Shown here in pieces: positions 38,196 to 62,896 of a DNA stretch of 64,000 bases (within the stretch, counting starts at the first letter, position 1; every line of letters begins with the position of its first letter). The position numbers and the translations under genes are program-made. The notes under the pieces are model-generated. The model searched no databases. It was not told the origin of the DNA and saw nothing but the letters and a program-made list of their open reading frames with translations. The stretch lies in the IMG/VR virus record IMGVR_UViG_3300021137_000001, positions 62,001 to 126,000 of that record; one strand, given 5' to 3'.

Positions 38196-38253
38196 GTAGA
38201 TGCCTGATTAGGGTCTACGGCTATTACTTGCTTTTTAAAAGGAGAAATATATG
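38196..38253 (+). promoter_or_regulatory. ROSE-like RNA thermometer candidate in the dnaK 5' UTR
   Basis: GTAGA..TCTAC hairpin, then CTTGCT pairing with the SD AGGAG around a bulged G. Confidence 0.55.
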
Positions 38254-40167
38254 AGCAAAAATATCGTTCTAGGAATCGACCTCGGAACTACAAATAGTTG
38301 CGTCGCAATTTATGAAAATAACAAACCCCGTATAATTGAAAATAATGAAGGCGCACGTACTACACCATCAATCGTTGCTTATGGCGATGAGATTATTGTT
38401 GGCGCAAGTGCTAAACGTCAGTCAGTTACCAATCCAAAGAACACAATTTACGCAAGCAAACGACTTATTGGTCGCAAGTTTGACGAAGAAGCAGTACAAA
38501 AAGACATTGGCTTAATGCCATACAGTATCGTTAAGAACGTTAACGGTGATGCATGGGTAGAAGTTAACGGAGAGAAATTAGCACCTCCACAAATCTCAGC
38601 AGAAGTATTGCGCAAAATGAAATCAACCGCAGAAGACTATTTGGGTTATGCAGTAACGCAAGCAGTTATTACAGTACCAGCTTACTTCAATGATGCACAA
38701 CGTCAAGCAACTAAAGATGCAGGTCGTATTGCAGGCTTAGAAGTATTGCGTATTATTAACGAACCAACTGCAGCGGCATTAGCATTTGGTTGTGATAAAG
38801 GTGATAAAAAAGATCGCAAGATTGCTGTATATGACTTAGGTGGTGGTACATTTGACATTAGTATTATTGAAATTAGTGATGTAGATGGAGAGAAACAGTT
38901 TGAAGTACTTTCAACTAATGGCGATACATTCTTAGGTGGTGAAGACTTTGACCAACGTGTAATGGAATACTTAATCAGCGAGTTTAAGAAAGACTCTGGT
39001 ATTGATATTACTAAAGATATACTTGCACTACAACGCTTAAAAGAAGCCGCAGAGAAAGCAAAGATTGAGTTATCAAGCTCAACGCAAACAGAAGTAAATC
39101 TTCCATACATTACTGCTGACGCAACTGGTCCTAAGCATTTAGTTGTAAAACTTACCCGTGCTAAGTTCGAGAGTTTAGTTGAAGAACTAATTAAACGTTC
39201 AATTGATCCATGTAAGATTGCAGTTAAAGATTCTGGCATTAAAGTTAGCGACATTGATGATGTTATTCTTGTTGGCGGGCAAACACGTATGCCTAAAGTA
39301 CAAGAAGCTGTTGAAGCATTCTTTGGCAAAGCACCACGCAAAGACGTTAACCCAGATGAAGCAGTTGCAGTGGGTGCGGCAATTCAGGGTGCAGTGCTAG
39401 GTGGTGACAAAACAGACGTATTATTGCTTGATGTAACACCATTATCACTGGGAATTGAAACAATGGGTGGTATTATGACTAAGTTAATTAAGAAAAATAC
39501 AACTATCCCAACTAAAGCAAGCCAAACATTCTCTACAGCAGAGGATAATCAACCAGCTGTTACTGTTATGGTAGCACAAGGTGAGCGTGAATTTGTTAAA
39601 GACAACAAAGTACTTGGGCAGTTTAATTTAGAAGGTATCGCTCCAGCAATGCGCGGTGCTCCACAAATTGAAATTACACTAGACATTGATGCTAATGGTA
39701 TCTTAAAAGTAAGTGCTAAAGATAAAGCAACTGGCAAAGAAAACAAGATTACTATTAAAGCAAACAGTGGACTTACTGAAGCTGAAATTGAAGCAATGGT
39801 ACATGATGCAGAAGTTAATGCAGAAGCAGATACTAAGGCACGTGTAGTAGTCGAAGCAAAGAACGCGGCAGAAGCGCAAATCAATACAGTTAACAAAAAT
39901 CTTAAAGAACACGGCGATAAAATTACTGCTGAACAAAAGATTGAAATCGAAACTGCTATTACTGCGGCAGAAGCAACGTACACATCAGATGATGCAGAAG
40001 CAATTACTGCGGCAGTTGGTAAGGTATTTGAAGTTGCTAAACCATTGTTTGAAATTACTCAAGCACAAGAGTCGGCAACAGTTGAGCCAGGTGCGCAAAC
40101 AGAAACAGCGGCACAAGAAGGTGTTGTTGATGCAGAGTTTACGGAAGTTGATAAGGAGGCGAAATAA
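38251..40167 (+). CDS. dnaK: Hsp70 chaperone DnaK
   Basis: [32 protein letters not shown]. Confidence 0.98.
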
Positions 40168-54860: not shown

Positions 54861-55280
54861 ATGACTAAAAAAGATAAGATTTATAAATGTTTAAATTGTG
54901 ATGCTATAATTCCGTTTAAAGGATATACATATACACACAAATACTGTAATAATAAATGTCAAAGTGAGTTAAGAGCAAAAGATGCGCTCGATAAACACAA
55001 AGTGGCATTTTTTGAAGGAAGTTGTAAAAGTAGGCCGAGAATTAGGCAGATACTTGCAGAAATTCGCGGATATAAATGTGAATGCTGTGGATTGTCGGAG
55101 TGGCAAGGTAATTCGATTGTGTTGCAAGTGGATCATATTAATGGTGATCCATATAATGACAATCCGGATAACTTGAGACTTATTTGTCCTAATTGTCATA
55201 GCCAAACCGATACATTTGCTGGAGCCAATAGAGGTAACGGTAGATGGAGTAAAGAAGGACTTGCAAGGTATTACAAGTAA
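54861..55280 (+). mobile_element. HNH endonuclease upstream of tRNAs
   Basis: CECC, LQVDHING, NLRLICPNCH. Confidence 0.88.
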
Positions 55281-56411: not shown

Positions 56412-56440
56412 TTGACAAGAGTATAAATAGAATATATAAT
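56412..56440 (+). promoter_or_regulatory. Promoter of the tRNA array (sigma70 with nested late box)
   Basis: TTGACA-N17-TATAAT with TATAAATA inside the spacer. Confidence 0.85.
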
Positions 56441-56900: not shown

Positions 56901-56975
56901 CAGGGTATAGCTCAGCCTGGCCAGAGTCCTCGGTTTGGAACCGAGTTGTCGTAAGTTCGAATCTTACTACCCTGA
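56901..56975 (+). tRNA. tRNA-Pro (TGG), no encoded CCA
   Basis: CTCGG-TTTGGAA-CCGAG; acceptor stem extended by a flanking inverted repeat. Confidence 0.88.
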
Positions 56976-57080
56976 CAAAATGCATTACTTAAAAAGAGGT
57001 TAACACATACGGTAATTGGTAGTATAATAGCTACTTGAAGTTAAGTAATACGCTCTTTAACAGTTTGGAAGTTTTACAAT

Positions 57081-57182: not shown

Positions 57183-57794
57183 ATGACATATTACTACTTG
57201 TATCAAATCACTAATTTAGTGAATGCAAAAATTTACGTTGGAGTACATAAAACGAAATCATTAGATGACGGATATATGGGCTCTGGAAAAATTATTCAAT
57301 GTGCAATTAAAAAACACGGAATTGATAATTTTAAAAAAGACATACTTGAGACTTTTGACACATCAGAAGCTATGTATGCACGTGAGAAAGAAATAGTAAC
57401 AGATCAGTTTCTGTTACGCGAAGATACCTATAACTTACGTAGAGGCGGAACTGGCGGATTTGATTATATAAACAAGCAACCATGGGTGCATACTACAAAC
57501 AGGATAATAGGAGATATAAAGAAAAGTAAAACATTAAAAGGTAGACGCCCTTCTGAAAATACGTTAATAGCAGTAAGGTTAATGCATCAAGACGGAAGAG
57601 TAAAGTATGATACGTTTACTGGTAAACAGCATACCATCGAAACTAAACAAAAAATGTCAATTGCGAAAAAAGGAAAAGGATGCAATCAGCATAACAGTCA
57701 ATTCGGTACTATATGGATAACGGATGGTATAAGTAACAAAAAAATAAAGAAAGATGTTACTATTCCAGAAGGATGGAATAGAGGTAGAAGTTAA
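57183..57794 (+). mobile_element. GIY-YIG (SegB-like) homing endonuclease in the tRNA array
   Basis: YLYQITN...IYVGVH, YMGSG, YNLRRGG. Confidence 0.88.
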
Positions 57795-58058: not shown

Positions 58059-58457
58059 ATGTTTAAGAACAGTAAGAAACAAGGTGACGCTGGATTAGGG
58101 CAAGCAATAGCATATTTTACAATGAAAGGATATGATGTTGCGTTGCCACTAACAGATAGCGCAGACTGGGATATGATTGTTGAGATAGATGGTGAACTTA
58201 AAAGAGTCCAAGTTAAAACATCTAAACAACTATCTAAAACGGGTATAATGATGTTTAATGCTAATGTAAATGGCGGCAACATGTCATTTAATAAAAAACC
58301 TAAACTTATACCAGAACAACAATGGGATTTATTGTTCTTACATCACTTAGTGACAAATAAGCAAGCATTGATTCCTAAAGAAGCACTAACTACAAAAGGT
58401 CAAGTGAACTTAGGTAGTAGTCAATGTAAGTATAAAGATTTTATGATTAATGGATGA
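58059..58457 (+). mobile_element. PD-(D/E)XK endonuclease (I-Ssp6803I-like family)
   Basis: KQGD..., WDMIVE..RVQVKT; AGGAG SD; stop overlaps tRNA-Tyr. Confidence 0.75.
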
Positions 58458-58537: not shown

Positions 58538-58542
58538 ATTTA

Positions 58543-58619
58543 GTTGTGTCGTCGGTTCGAAGCCAACCTGTAATCAAGCGAAATAGCAGTTACAGTAGTT
58601 TACTTGGTAAAACAACAAC
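58543..58619 (+). ncRNA. Circularly permuted, anticodon-less tRNA-like element
   Basis: T-arm and 3' acceptor strand precede the 5' acceptor strand and D-arm; ends pair GTTGT/ACAAC. Confidence 0.65.
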
Positions 58620-58651
58620 AATTTTTGTAGTAAATTTAATAGGAGCAACAC

Positions 58652-58672
58652 ATGAAGCGAGTTAAACTTTAG
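58652..58672 (+). CDS. Mini-ORF MKRVKL* upstream of tRNA-Lys
   Basis: AGGAG SD 6 nt before ATG; AAG and AAA codons. Confidence 0.65.
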   Translation: MKRVKL

Positions 58673-58743
58673 TGTCGTCTTTAATCCCATTGTACTGTAT
58701 TAAAGGTAACGGCACGTTAAATCTTTAATACAGTACAATGGGA
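58672..58743 (+). promoter_or_regulatory. Two-state RNA switch overlapping the tRNA-Lys 5' end
   Basis: Perfect 21-bp inverted repeat 58685-58705/58723-58743 versus alternative 58672-58685/58699-58715. Confidence 0.7.
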
Positions 58744-58815
58744 GTATGGTGAAATTGGTTATCACATGGGACTTTTAATCCTTCGTTCAGAGTTCAAGTC
58801 TCTGTGCTCCTACCA
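58740..58815 (+). tRNA. tRNA-Lys (TTT)
   Basis: Loop CTTTTAA; weak anticodon stem TGGGA/TCCTT; CCA. Confidence 0.85.
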
Positions 58816-58922
58816 TAAGAAAGTACATTGCTAACGCCTCTGAGAAGGGTTCCGGTAGTCCTGTATCAATTAATAGCTAAGTCAGCAGATGGGTTCGCTG
58901 AATGTAGTGTACTTCCTTATGG
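58813..58922 (+). ncRNA. Long-stem small RNA unit 3
   Basis: About 18-bp closing stem beginning at the tRNA-Lys CCA. Confidence 0.5.
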
Positions 58923-59004: not shown

Positions 59005-59062
59005 ACTTTTAATATGGCTTCCGTCCGTAGAATACTGCTTGCAGTCGGCCCGGAAGTTCTTT

Positions 59063-59137: not shown

Positions 59138-59200
59138 AGTTTTAAAATAATAGTTGACAGTGTGTATTAGAACTGTTACACTATGTAGATAGTAACAAAT

Positions 59201-59440: not shown

Positions 59441-59515
59441 GCCGCCTTAGCTCATTTGGTAGAGCAACGCACTTGTAATGCGTAGGCGCCCAGTTCGAAC
59501 CCGGGAGGCGGACCA
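59441..59515 (+). tRNA. tRNA-Thr (TGT), acceptor 3' strand one nt short
   Basis: ACGCA-CTTGTAA-TGCGT; ends AGGCGGACCA. Confidence 0.8.
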
Positions 59516-59523
59516 ATTTTAAT

Positions 59524-59597: not shown

Positions 59598-59661
59598 AAT
59601 TTTGCTTGACAAAATGTCAAAACGAATGTATAATACACTTAATTAAAAAAAGGAGGCTGAC

Positions 59662-60217: not shown

Positions 60218-60588
60218 TGGACTTTACAATTGACCCAGAGTACTTAACAAGTGTAACTATTCGCGATGAGTGGAACACGTATACACGTAATGGTCGTGTA
60301 CCTACAGCAGAAGAACTTATTTTAATTATTCAAGGCAAGGGTGAGTGCTCGACTACTAGTTCAGCCGACCACCCAGAGTTTGCTAAGTTACGTGAGGAAC
60401 TAGGTTTGCTACGTTATATTCATATACAGCGTAGTTGGTGGAATGGCGATAGTGTATTAAAACCATTCACACTTAACGGAAGAAAGTTTAAGGTAGGAGC
60501 ACAGTTTAGCAGTGGTAGTGCAATGGGTACACACCTTATTGTACGTGCTAAACACCCAGAATATTATAAGGATGAATATGATGATTAA
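60217..60588 (+). CDS. Hypothetical protein
   Basis: Coupled ORF. Confidence 0.65.
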   Translation: MDFTIDPEYLTSVTIRDEWNTYTRNGRVPTAEELILIIQGKGECSTTSSADHPEFAKLREELGLLRYIHIQRSWWNGDSVLKPFTLNGRKFKVGAQFSSGSAMGTHLIVRAKHPEYYKDEYDD

Positions 60589-61066
60589 ACCATGGATTGA
60601 AAACGTTAGTATGAAAGACGTACAAGTAGGCGAGCACTTTGATGCTGGCACTAACTCTATGCTTATTCAAATCGTTGACCCTATTACTCTTTTTCCAACA
60701 CCAAAGTTTGCATTTAAAGAAGTGCATCAGTTTAAGTTTTTAGATGCAGAAGATACTGACGTTGCAGAGTACGGCGAAGAGCCATTGATTAGCGATCAGC
60801 AAGCAGAAGCAATTTTACAGTTGCTACAACGTGCGCTAGCCGACAATATGAACATTGTTGTACATTGTCACGCTGGTTTATGTCGTAGTGGTGCAGTAGT
60901 AGAAATTGGTGTTATGATGGGCTTTAGAGATACTGAAAAGTTTCGCAGTCCTAACCTACGTGTTAAACACAAACTAATGAAATTGCTTGGGCTAACACAT
61001 AACCCAGATGAGCAACACAACTGGCGTGATGATTATAGACATCACTTAACTAAAAGCAATATGTAA
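60578..61066 (+). CDS. Protein-tyrosine/dual-specificity phosphatase-like protein
   Basis: VHCHAGLCRS (CX5R). Confidence 0.85.
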   Translation: MMIKPWIENVSMKDVQVGEHFDAGTNSMLIQIVDPITLFPTPKFAFKEVHQFKFLDAEDTDVAEYGEEPLISDQQAEAILQLLQRALADNMNIVVHCHAGLCRSGAVVEIGVMMGFRDTEKFRSPNLRVKHKLMKLLGLTHNPDEQHNWRDDYRHHLTKSNM

Positions 61067-61280: not shown

Positions 61281-61356
61281 GCAACCTTAGCTCATCTGGT
61301 AGAGCACCTGCTTGAAGCGCAGGGTGTGTTTGGTTCAAGTCCAAGAGGTTGCACCA
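61281..61356 (+). tRNA. tRNA-Phe (GAA)
   Basis: CCTGC-TTGAAGC-GCAGG, CCA. Confidence 0.9.
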
Positions 61357-61383
61357 AACAGTAAATACATAAAAGGGCAGTAT

Positions 61384-61878
61384 ATGAAAAAACTGAATTT
61401 CGATGAAGTAAGTGAATTTATCAATGCACAAAGTGATGAAACTAAAATCTACATTGGCGGTGATAGCACACGCTTTCGTAAGAATGGTGTATGGCATGCA
61501 GAATACACTATGGCAATTGTAGTACACATTGATGGCAAACATGGTTGTAAAATCTTTGGCGAAAGCTCAACTGAAATTGATTACGACCAAAAACGTAATC
61601 GCCCAAGTATGCGTCTAATGAATGAAGTGTACAAAATTAGTGAACTATACTTAAAACTACACGAAGTATTAGAAGGGCGTGATGTTGCTGTACACTTAGA
61701 TATTAACCCAAACGAAGCACACGGTTCAAGCTGTGTTGTGTCACAAGCAATAGGCTACATTCGTGGTACTTGCAACGTTATCCCAATGGTTAAACCTCAT
61801 GCGTGGGCTGCATCGTATTGTGCGGACCGCTTGAAGGAAGTTATGGCAATGCAGGAAAATCAACGCAAAATAGCCTAA
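61384..61878 (+). CDS. RNase H-like YkuK/DUF458 protein
   Basis: IYIGGDS, RLMNEV, VHLDIN, KP..AAS..AD. Confidence 0.78.
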   Translation: MKKLNFDEVSEFINAQSDETKIYIGGDSTRFRKNGVWHAEYTMAIVVHIDGKHGCKIFGESSTEIDYDQKRNRPSMRLMNEVYKISELYLKLHEVLEGRDVAVHLDINPNEAHGSSCVVSQAIGYIRGTCNVIPMVKPHAWAASYCADRLKEVMAMQENQRKIA

Positions 61879-61993
61879 AGTGCTGTGTTATTTGTTGATA
61901 AAGTTCTTGACTTTGCACCACTGATTATGCTATAATACATTTTTATATAGTTGTTATTAAACATTTTATTTCTCTTAAAGGATACTTTTATTT

Positions 61994-62896
61994 ATGCTTA
62001 GACTCTGTATTGCATCAGATATACATTTGGAGTTTGGTAGCATTGAATTAACCAATACCTCTAATGCTGACGTGCTAATCTTAGCTGGCGATATATGTGT
62101 TGCTCGTGACATTGAATTAGCTGGCAAGAATATGTACAGCAATCGTAAACGTGCTGATCGTTATATTGAATTCTTTCAGCAGGTAAGTCGTGCGTTCCCT
62201 AAAGTTATTTACGTAGTGGGCAATCACGAGCACTATGATGGTGATGTTAAGTACACAAACGGCATTCTTAAACGTGCATTAGCAGAGTTTGAAAACATTC
62301 ATATACTTGAAAAAGAAACATTGGAACTTGGTGACGTTACATTTATCGGTGCTACTATGTGGACTGATATGAATGGGGGCGATCCACTTACACTAGCGGG
62401 CATTAAAAATGCAATGAATGACTTTAGGTGCATTGATAACAGCAACAACATGGTTCAACGTAAAGTCCCATTATACGATGAAGGTGGTGAATTTAATAGT
62501 GTACGTAATGTTATTGGGTTTAAGTTTAAAGAAGAAGCAAGCAAGTTTACACCAACTGATGCTATGGATGATCACAAGCAGGCAATAGATTATATCAATC
62601 ATGTTGTTACTAATGATACAACTAAGAAATATGTAGTTGTGGGACATCACGCACCAAGTATGCAAAGCTGTGCTGATAGATTTCGTGGCGACAGGATTAT
62701 GAACGGCGGGTTCTATACAGAGCTCGGTGACTTTATGGCATACCGCCCTCAGATTGCCTGCTGGATTCACGGTCACACTCACGATCCATACGATTATGTC
62801 ATTGGGGAAACACGTGTTGTATGTAATCCACGTGGTTATATTGGATACGAAGCACAAGCAGTTGATTTTGAGTTAAAATACATAGATGTTGCATAA
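61994..62896 (+). CDS. Calcineurin-like metallophosphoesterase
   Basis: SDIHLE, AGD, GNHE, HHAP, HGHTH, NPRGY. Confidence 0.9.
   Translation: MLRLCIASDIHLEFGSIELTNTSNADVLILAGDICVARDIELAGKNMYSNRKRADRYIEFFQQVSRAFPKVIYVVGNHEHYDGDVKYTNGILKRALAEFENIHILEKETLELGDVTFIGATMWTDMNGGDPLTLAGIKNAMNDFRCIDNSNNMVQRKVPLYDEGGEFNSVRNVIGFKFKEEASKFTPTDAMDDHKQAIDYINHVVTNDTTKKYVVVGHHAPSMQSCADRFRGDRIMNGGFYTELGDFMAYRPQIACWIHGHTHDPYDYVIGETRVVCNPRGYIGYEAQAVDFELKYIDVA

Follow-up and report, generated by a model that had tools for sequence, protein, structure and literature searches.

Ribosome-mediated attenuation is textbook biology, and several of its forms, together with a few other RNA devices, resemble the element described here, a translated-looking leader in front of a phage tRNA-Lys(UUU) gene. 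The element lies in a 64,000-nucleotide (nt) stretch of DNA, hereafter the window (positions 62,001 to 126,000 of the IMG/VR record IMGVR_UViG_3300021137_000001), which comes from a 329-kb viral contig that encodes DnaB, a class I ribonucleotide reductase and a DnaK homolog and for which no close cultured relative was found. Like this leader as we read it, the attenuators of the trp, his, leu, thr, pheA and ilv operons feature a short translated open reading frame (ORF) with codons of the regulated amino acid and overlapping helices (1:2 versus 2:3) that are selected by the position of the ribosome, and they often sit directly behind a promoter. In translational attenuation of the ermC/cat/cmlA type, a ribosome stalled in a mini-ORF likewise remodels a downstream hairpin post-transcriptionally, and T-box riboswitches are comparable in that an RNA acting in cis couples the state of one tRNA to a gene of the same amino-acid system. 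The bar minigenes of phage lambda also combine a phage Shine-Dalgarno (SD) sequence with a very short ORF that interacts with the pool of one tRNA. The RNase III stems of T4 tRNA maturation and rRNA processing share with the window copy, and with that copy only, a long perfect duplex beside a stable RNA on a polycistronic phage transcript. Finally, there are inhibitory pre-tRNA 5′ leaders, in which pairing at the cleavage-site region lowers RNase P efficiency (PMC10731613). We lean modestly towards the reading that the element acts as a leader-peptide (ribosome-position) RNA switch on the 5′ maturation of the phage tRNA-Lys, with feedback from the supply of Lys-tRNA(UUU).

The leader and the tRNA gene comprise the following features:

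58641-58645, + strand: SD sequence AGGAG, with a 6-nt spacer to the ATG, read from the sequence
58652-58672, + strand: leader mini-ORF ATG AAG CGA GTT AAA CTT TAG (MKRVKL*), with the TAG at 58670-58672
58655-58657, + strand: Lys codon 2 (AAG); Lys is found there in all 98 homologs collected without an ORF constraint
58664-58666, + strand: Lys codon AAA at −2 from the stop, the invariant sensor position; AAA in 98/98 of the same homologs
58672-58685, + strand: segment 1, the 5′ arm of helix B, starting from the G of the stop codon
58685-58705, + strand: 5′ arm of helix A, a perfect 21-base-pair (bp) inverted repeat
58699-58715, + strand: segment 2b, the 3′ arm of helix B (ATTAAAG..ACGGCAC), whose first 7 nt double as the upper end of helix A's 5′ arm
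58711-58721, + strand: conserved motif GGCAC-GTTAAA, of which GGCAC closes helix B
58723-58743, + strand: 3′ arm of helix A, whose last four bases GGGA (58740-58743) are nt 1-4 of the tRNA
58740-58815, + strand: tRNA-Lys(UUU) with encoded CCA and a G1-U72 pair (ARAGORN; Rfam RF00005, 58.7 bits)

Direct reading of the window sequence confirms the AGGAG and the MKRVKL-TAG frame that a first-pass annotation, made from the letters alone, had placed here. The pattern AGGAG-N4-9-ATG occurs 14 times on the coding strand and once on the opposite strand of the 64 kb; the leader is the 14th, the other 13 coding-strand sites open putative ORFs of 23-638 codons, and the SD-ATG of the leader is unlikely to be an accident. 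Two of the five sense codons after the ATG encode Lys. The two mutually exclusive helices of that annotation are likewise present exactly as it drew them. Helix A joins 58685-58705 to its exact reverse complement at 58723-58743 (21 bp, including the GGGA of the tRNA, around a 17-nt loop), so pairing positions −17 to +4 of the pre-tRNA; a repeat search extends it to 24 nt at 96%, and its arm sequence matches the 64-kb window twice, both times at the two arms themselves, against 0.01 matches expected. Helix B pairs GTGTCGT-CTTTAAT (58672-58685), whose first base is the G of the stop codon, with ATTAAAG-gta-ACGGCAC (58699-58715). The G(T/A)(T/A)AAA part of the 58711-58721 motif is an A-rich linker, which in the window is located in the loop of helix A; GGCACGTTAAA is unchanged across seven variants of the window lineage, and the wider family alignments keep both GGCAC and the AAA after it unchanged but differ in the intervening bases (e.g., GGCACGTAAAA, GGCACAGTAAA).

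The 175-nt leader-tRNA region has a folding z of −6.9. Until transcription reaches about 58730, helix B is the predicted minimum-free-energy (MFE) structure of the nascent RNA (−11.8 kcal/mol), and helix A (−34.8 kcal/mol) wins in prediction once its 3′ arm has been transcribed. In the predicted fold, the leader pairs with the RNase P cleavage-site region in competition with the acceptor stem, as in inhibitory leaders; over the whole precursor, enforcing helix A gives −51.7 kcal/mol and enforcing the acceptor stem −43.3 kcal/mol, energies of a kind that is unreliable for tRNAs. Several other readings of the region were rejected. The pairing of AGGAGCA with the 3′ acceptor strand TGCTCCT of the tRNA, an "extended acceptor" that appears in the MFE fold, is mostly the resemblance of the SD AGGAG to the tRNA GGGAG, and the match shrinks to 5 bp with the other tRNA-Lys body found among relatives. 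The leader offers no convincing cloverleaf register as a decayed tRNA gene or a duplicate of tRNA-Lys, the likeness of CTTTAATCC to an anticodon loop is short and absent as a conserved feature in relatives, and the mir-239 and YrlA matches over the leader region are sub-threshold noise.

A search of other phages for such leaders before tRNA-Lys, proposed with the first-pass annotation, was run and found at least 185 viral and metagenome loci by pattern scans, with 105 distinct leaders. Exact-word scans recover the leader in six IMG/VR loci and on three metagenome contigs; of eight metagenome matches of a 19-mer, four are due to chance. In these close lineages the adjoining tRNA-Tyr, tRNA-His and spacers differ by 10-30% and the flanks farther upstream are unrelated, while a block that runs from about 10 nt before the SD up to the beginning of the hairpin is nearly invariant. 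Three versions of the hairpin occur, each pairing with GGGA, related lineages keep helix A as an imperfect 17-20-bp hairpin, and two unrelated tRNA-Lys(UUU) bodies stand behind the same leader in mosaic combinations. Such mosaics of leader, hairpin and tRNA-Lys body fit frequent recombination in a tRNA region interspersed with endonuclease-like ORFs. The conservation among close relatives argued for function with little power, as the ORF shows a single substitution (Val to Gly), and recent horizontal transfer alone as its explanation has been superseded by divergent homologs.

Those homologs came from two patterns that leave the ORF unconstrained. The first, anchored on the hairpin base and loop with the ORF free, retrieved four much more divergent homologs, all upstream of tRNA-Lys(UUU), each with an SD, an MKRGK-x ORF and a TAG followed by TGTC, and with AAG and AAA exchanged synonymously at codon 2. 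The second used only the loop and 3′ arm of helix B, to avoid circularity, and gave at least 120 matches. The statistics on the ORF below all refer to the 98 unique true homologs among the matches listed, a number that is a lower bound (at least 98). A further, ORF-anchored pattern gave 75 loci, mostly with a tandem of tRNA-Lys(CUU) and tRNA-Lys(UUU) behind the leader (the tandem or CUU class, as distinct from the UUU-direct class of the window). A covariance model built from 40 leaders of the CUU class alone finds a single significant site in the window, at 58636-58747 (47.6 bits, E 1.5e-8), which together with the 185 loci rules out a chance or one-off hairpin. At one locus (L155:2095-2300), no tRNA follows; downstream of the mini-ORF and the helix B 5′ half come unrelated sequence and an ORF, and an insertion apparently interrupts the leader.

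An in-frame ORF from ATG to TAG is present in all 98 homologs, with a core of 6, 7, 8 or 9 codons. Its length differences are whole codons throughout, the TAG is always the one that opens helix B, and an SD-like motif precedes the ATG by 4-9 nt in 86 of the 98. Lys occupies core codon 2 in every case (AAA in 83 and AAG in 9 of the 92 ORFs that start directly at this ATG; the remaining six have an extra in-frame ATG upstream, so that the MKR core is internal). At codon 3, Arg is encoded by three synonymous triplets (CGT 59, CGA 28, CGC 3). All 98 homologs have AAA, never AAG, at −2 from the stop, and the freely varying last codon encodes Arg (in 57), Leu, Ser, Pro or Ile. Across the family as a whole, the ORFs comprise 46 distinct sequences and 24 peptides with the consensus M-K-R-x(1-4)-K-x-stop. 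Judged by these substitutions, the mini-ORF evolves like a translated ORF. A loss of the Lys codons from homologs, which had been named as an outcome that would refute the idea, did not occur; the earlier choice of Lys2 as the sensor stands insofar as Lys is kept there, and is amended in that the sensor codon with strict invariance is AAA(−2) and not only Lys2. The conservation of K, R and K as amino acids could also be taken to mean that the basic micro-peptide (MKRxGKR) is itself functional, which we consider very improbable, given that it has only 6-9 residues, that its middle and last residues vary freely, and that its stop is locked to an RNA helix with an exclusive link to tRNA-Lys.

That link holds across the family, in which the module is always upstream of tRNA-Lys, as UUU alone, as the CUU+UUU tandem or, in a few cases, as CUU alone; the downstream genes of the 98 listed homologs are tRNA-Lys(CUU)+tRNA-Lys(UUU) in 92, CUU alone in 5 and UUU alone in 1. 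An SD-mini-ORF precedes 123 of 244 tRNA-Lys leaders and 1-6% of the leaders of every other tRNA type, none of them recurrent, in a set of about 3,000 distinct tRNA leaders taken from loci gathered via this element, so that the enrichment at Lys is by design and it is the lack of analogs that is informative. No cognate mini-ORF design was found before other tRNAs, among 245 leaders and then among the about 3,000; recurrent "MQRIANP" ORFs were discarded as artefacts inside tRNA-Cys genes. Among the tRNAs behind the leader, one common tRNA-Lys(CUU) type (L105:1499-1567 and similar) scores 30.7 bits with the Rfam tRNA model (threshold 29) and has an atypical D arm, and the tRNA-Lys(UUU) of two loci (L095:2504-2595, L097:7725-7810) has a variable region that seems unusually long for a Lys tRNA.

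The two helices were compared in one alignment of 40 tandem-class leaders (A3) and another of 17 UUU-direct leaders (A4). Cells of helix B are paired in 94.0% (A3) and 95.9% (A4) of cases, versus 22-57% with slid partners, with four and six compensatory pairs and 29 and 25 cells changed on both sides, and its covariation score is exceeded in 0 of 500 shuffles; the GGCAC of its 3′ arm is invariant in all homologs. In the tandem class, this 3′ arm can alternatively pair with the junction of leader and tRNA, including the first 3-4 nt of the tRNA, and its variants AGGGTTGG, TGGATGG, AAGGTTG and GGGTG are matched by the junctions CCAACCCT, CCATCCA, CAACCTT and CACCC, respectively. This junction helix, which in relatives spans about −4 to +4 of the pre-tRNA, is 83.4% paired, with 22 cells changed on both sides and again 0 of 500 shuffles above it. 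Covariation is three-way at columns 43/71/106 of A3, where one middle nucleotide changes with both of its partners, as C-G-C in 22 sequences and U-A-U in 12. By energy, cognate duplexes also pair better than duplexes permuted between sequences, with 0/5000 permutations for helix B, for 2b with the junction in the CUU class and for 2a with the tail in the UUU class (the loop of B with the tail). The upper portion of helix A in UUU-class leaders, for which MAFFT indels preclude column-wise counts, was assessed by per-sequence folds and partner permutation instead. The covariation and the exclusive linkage to tRNA-Lys point to a conserved design and not to the reading of one sequence: the combination first noticed in the window, a cognate-codon mini-ORF with two mutually exclusive helices, one of which hides the tRNA 5′ end, recurs in the family with both helices covarying and sharing nucleotides. 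On these comparisons, the architecture of a ribosome-position switch is well supported; that the choice of helix depends on the ribosome is what we infer from it.

Predicted folds agree with a competition between the helices. With segment 1 available, tandem-class leaders form helix B and a small hairpin and leave the tRNA 5′ end free (0.09 of its first six nt paired to the leader), and when segment 1 is masked in silico, the junction helix encloses the small hairpin and the mean number of paired tRNA nt rises from 0.09 to 3.24 (97 sequences). In the UUU-direct class, 3-6 of the first six tRNA nt pair with the upstream leader in 17/17 predicted folds, through helix A in 15 and through a short local helix in two (L134, L150), where helix B is the MFE. 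Helix A of this class has −20 to −35 kcal/mol and is usually stronger than B (−10 to −21). By these models, the RNase P site would be buried in the junction helix or helix A, as would the acceptor stem's first 3-4 nt. Most family members have a short helix of 7-8 bp (helix T) with a 3-6-bp hairpin in place of the long helix A, and the window copy, with its perfect 21 bp, is atypical and a derived extreme of the family.

This difference in length bears on whether helix A is instead a processing or stability element, that is, an RNase III site or a 3′ hairpin protecting the upstream fragment after RNase P, beside a non-regulatory mini-ORF. The window stem (perfect over 21 bp, 24 nt at 96%) is as large as RNase III substrates are, a further 21-bp leader/trailer stem encloses the tRNA-Pro of this cluster, tRNAs and ORFs are transcribed together, and RNase III participates in T4 tRNA maturation (PMC4810235). 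Yet the stem of 21-24 bp in the window corresponds to 11+7 bp with internal loops in close relatives and to 7-8 bp plus a 3-6-bp hairpin in the CUU class, which places most members below RNase III size, and neither the invariant ORF nor its fixed register with helix B nor the three-way covariation is explained. We regard this account as quite unlikely, and the suggestion of the first-pass annotation that helix A creates an RNase III substrate fails as a general mechanism because the equivalent helices are too short in most members (7-8 bp).

Another alternative is that the leader controls transcription into the tRNA-Lys genes, through Rho-dependent termination or pausing that is released by the leading ribosome, and not their processing. 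Of 96 evaluable members, 34 have a sigma70 promoter match of at least 10/12 that ends 20-30 nt upstream of the ATG, in many cases a perfect one (12/12), and in those 34 the mini-ORF is the first feature of the transcript. The resulting order of promoter, leader ORF and alternative helices is that of classical attenuators, and helix B is followed by an A-rich, single-stranded linker. Against this, neither helix is followed by a hairpin and U-run: no terminator-like site and no U-run is found on either strand within 58600-58830, where the sequence after helix A is GUAUGGUG, nor is there an intrinsic terminator after the junction helix in relatives, so that an intrinsic terminator at the leader is ruled out on both strands. 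The alternative helix also covaries specifically with the first tRNA nucleotides, which argues for the tRNA 5′ end as the target. Control of transcription is therefore improbable in our estimation.

Returning to the ribosome-position switch, its proposed operation follows from the register of the codons and helix B. A ribosome shields about 13-15 nt downstream of the first base of the P-site codon (toeprint at about +16). If the stop codon occupied the A site, it would cover the GTGTC and reach into the inner stem of B; with B blocked at the stop, segment 2 would be free to trap the nascent tRNA 5′ end, so that folding and RNase P cleavage would be blocked or delayed. If Lys-tRNA(UUU) is scarce, ribosomes would stall at codon 2 or at AAA(−2). 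With Lys2 in the A site, B would be untouched and the ribosome binding site blocked; with AAA(−2) in the A site, the edge of the ribosome would lie at about the first base of B, the last position that leaves B intact. Helix B would then hold segment 2, the tRNA 5′ end would be free and tRNA-Lys would be matured. AAA, unlike AAG, is decoded only by tRNA-Lys(UUU), a tRNA that is attacked by PrrC and by PARIS AriB, and a plausible trigger would be depletion of the host tRNA-Lys(UUU) by anticodon nucleases. The direction of this scheme (Lys-tRNA shortage, helix B, free tRNA 5′ end, maturation), its RNase P step and its link to anticodon nucleases are ones we infer from this geometry and from reports that tRNA-Lys is the target of PARIS AriB and that phage tRNA-Lys rescues infection (PMC11464382, PMC12409363), and that a stable structure beside the cleavage site, or leader pairing near it, lowers RNase P kcat/Km (PMC10731613). 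In the window copy, with its 21-bp helix A, the off state would be strongly favored and the decision would be kinetic.

Several points weigh against this scheme. The window helix A (−34.8 kcal/mol) is about 24 kcal/mol stronger than helix B (−11), and in the models it may nucleate on the 13-nt loop of B, so that protection of the tRNA end by B may be brief; persistence of B against it at equilibrium seems unlikely from these energies, and the window copy may be largely "off", depend on kinetics or have drifted toward RNase III processing. In the CUU class, the junction helix is less stable than B together with a folded tRNA, and since this equilibrium favors B, sequestration would be transient unless the precursors are degraded. 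The directly gated tRNA is tRNA-Lys(CUU) in 97 of the 98 listed homologs, which is not a reader of the AAA sensor codons. The shuffle controls leave shared ancestry in, part of the family was gathered with ORF-containing patterns (those sequences were kept out of the ORF statistics), and no cultured phage with the leader was found in 50,697 phage records. The conserved Arg at codon 3 would not be explained by a pure Lys sensor, an MK start is common at bacterial and phage genes, and a basic residue at −2 has been reported to favor efficient termination.

The last of these points would also suit a switch that reports general translation activity, with the Lys and Arg codons kept for efficient initiation and termination of a very short ORF (AAA after AUG, basic residues near the stop). 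Such a device would account for the Arg at codon 3, conserved via three synonymous codons, and for the Arg last codon in 57 of the 98 homologs, neither of which Lys sensing explains, and MK starts are common among the longer ORFs of the window (4 of the 13 with AGGAG-N4-9-ATG). It is nevertheless unlikely, if the least so of the alternatives, as the element is found only before tRNA-Lys genes, no comparable leader occurs at other tRNAs among about 3,000 leaders, and the −2 codon is AAA in all 98 and never AAG, which is stricter than an amino-acid preference and is the codon read by tRNA-Lys(UUU) only.

A bolder version of the ribosome-position switch, to which we give slightly less than even credence, is that this is the first tRNA gene self-regulated through translation: the AAA codons would gauge usable tRNA-Lys(UUU), and a collapse of the host pool (for instance through PrrC or PARIS AriB) would release the phage precursor for RNase P, in an inducible counter-defense and homeostasis circuit widespread in large uncultured phages. 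If true, a phage-borne element would tie the production of one tRNA directly, in a closed loop, to how much of that tRNA is usable, the tRNA concerned would be one destroyed by several bacterial immune nucleases, and phage tRNA arrays would become a regulated counter-defense and not a constitutive codon supplement. The leader would also provide a compact, portable sensor of tRNA-Lys(UUU) status. The question of why phages carry tRNAs becomes experimentally approachable for one tRNA, and the 105 distinct leaders offer sufficient diversity for covariation-guided mutagenesis.

The tRNA-Lys gene belongs to a cluster of 13 tRNAs on the + strand, in and around which the following features are found:

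54861-55280, 57183-57794 and 58059-58457: HNH, GIY-YIG/SegE-like and PD-(D/E)XK endonuclease-like ORFs among the tRNA genes
56412-56440 and 59606-59634: perfect TTGACA-17-TATAAT promoters (12/12) inside the tRNA region
57000-57028 and 61907-61936: promoter sites scoring 11/12
60512-61066: dual-specificity phosphatase-like ORF adjoining the tRNA cluster
61312-61878: RNase H-like ORF (PF04308) adjoining the cluster
61994-62896: calcineurin-like metallophosphoesterase ORF adjoining the cluster

The several perfect sigma70 promoters within the cluster indicate that its tRNAs and ORFs share transcripts. From their predicted families, the phosphatase-like, RNase H-like and metallophosphoesterase ORFs could have functions in the healing or processing of RNA ends. 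The stem at tRNA-Pro(UGG) (56901-56976) is a 21-nt leader/trailer inverted repeat (56887-56907/56968-56988; 95%) that extends the acceptor stem of this tRNA, which has no encoded CCA; the duplex, predicted at −34.6 kcal/mol, is reminiscent of the processing stems of rRNA. An 87-nt insert (58538-58624) separates tRNA-Tyr from the Lys leader and is present in one related locus (L087) and absent from three others (L003, L005, L010). It contains a T-arm-like GTCGGTTCGAAGCCAAC and a near-repeat of the leader's TTTAGTGTCGTC, has a weak, sub-threshold match to YrlA (Y RNA-like; 25.9 bits against a gathering score of 69) and is probably the remnant of a tRNA. Many tRNAs of the cluster have a recurring TTTTAAT-like motif directly after their CCA end or in front of them (e.g., 59005-59017, 59138-59150, 59515-59523), which may be a shared processing signal. 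Farther away, 38251-40167 encodes the full-length DnaK/Hsp70 homolog, with about 66% identity to bacterial DnaK and 52-60% to the copies of Lak and other huge phages.

Set against the described systems, the leader shares with trp-type attenuators a cognate-codon ORF and overlapping helices, the latter with a presumed ribosome dependence. It differs from the amino-acid operon attenuators in lacking a U-tract or intrinsic terminator, its third partner being the acceptor 5′ strand with the RNase P site; in regulating not a biosynthetic operon but the tRNA that reads the sensor codon; and in an ORF that is far shorter (6-9 codons), with the key codon just before the helix and not inside segment 1. 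The hairpins of ermC/cat/cmlA hide a ribosome binding site in response to an antibiotic, whereas here the hidden part would be a tRNA 5′ end and the presumed signal the tRNA supply; no SD or start of a downstream protein gene is sequestered, with no ORF start in or after the hairpin. T-boxes bind their tRNA directly (specifier codon, T-box sequence) and do so without translation, in contrast to the translated-looking tRNA-Lys leader, and Rfam 15 scans of the tRNA region of the window and three related loci gave tRNA hits but no T-box and no other known RNA family, the leader itself yielding nothing above sub-threshold noise. The action of bar minigenes is in trans, via peptidyl-tRNA drop-off, and they are not known to be linked to a tRNA gene or alternative helices. 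Unlike RNase III stems, most family members have no duplex that is long enough, and unlike the known inhibitory pre-tRNA leaders, which are static, the pairing here competes with a conserved alternative helix tied to an ORF. Scans of bacterial and archaeal genomes gave three pattern matches, all due to chance and without the ORF, and full-text searching of the literature found no description of such a leader. As far as could be found, attenuation that controls a tRNA gene or hides a tRNA 5′ end from maturation is unprecedented. The leader is thus attenuator-like but without the defining terminator, the tRNA 5′ end as an attenuator-like target is new, and there is a substantial chance that the arrangement deserves the name of a new regulatory principle.

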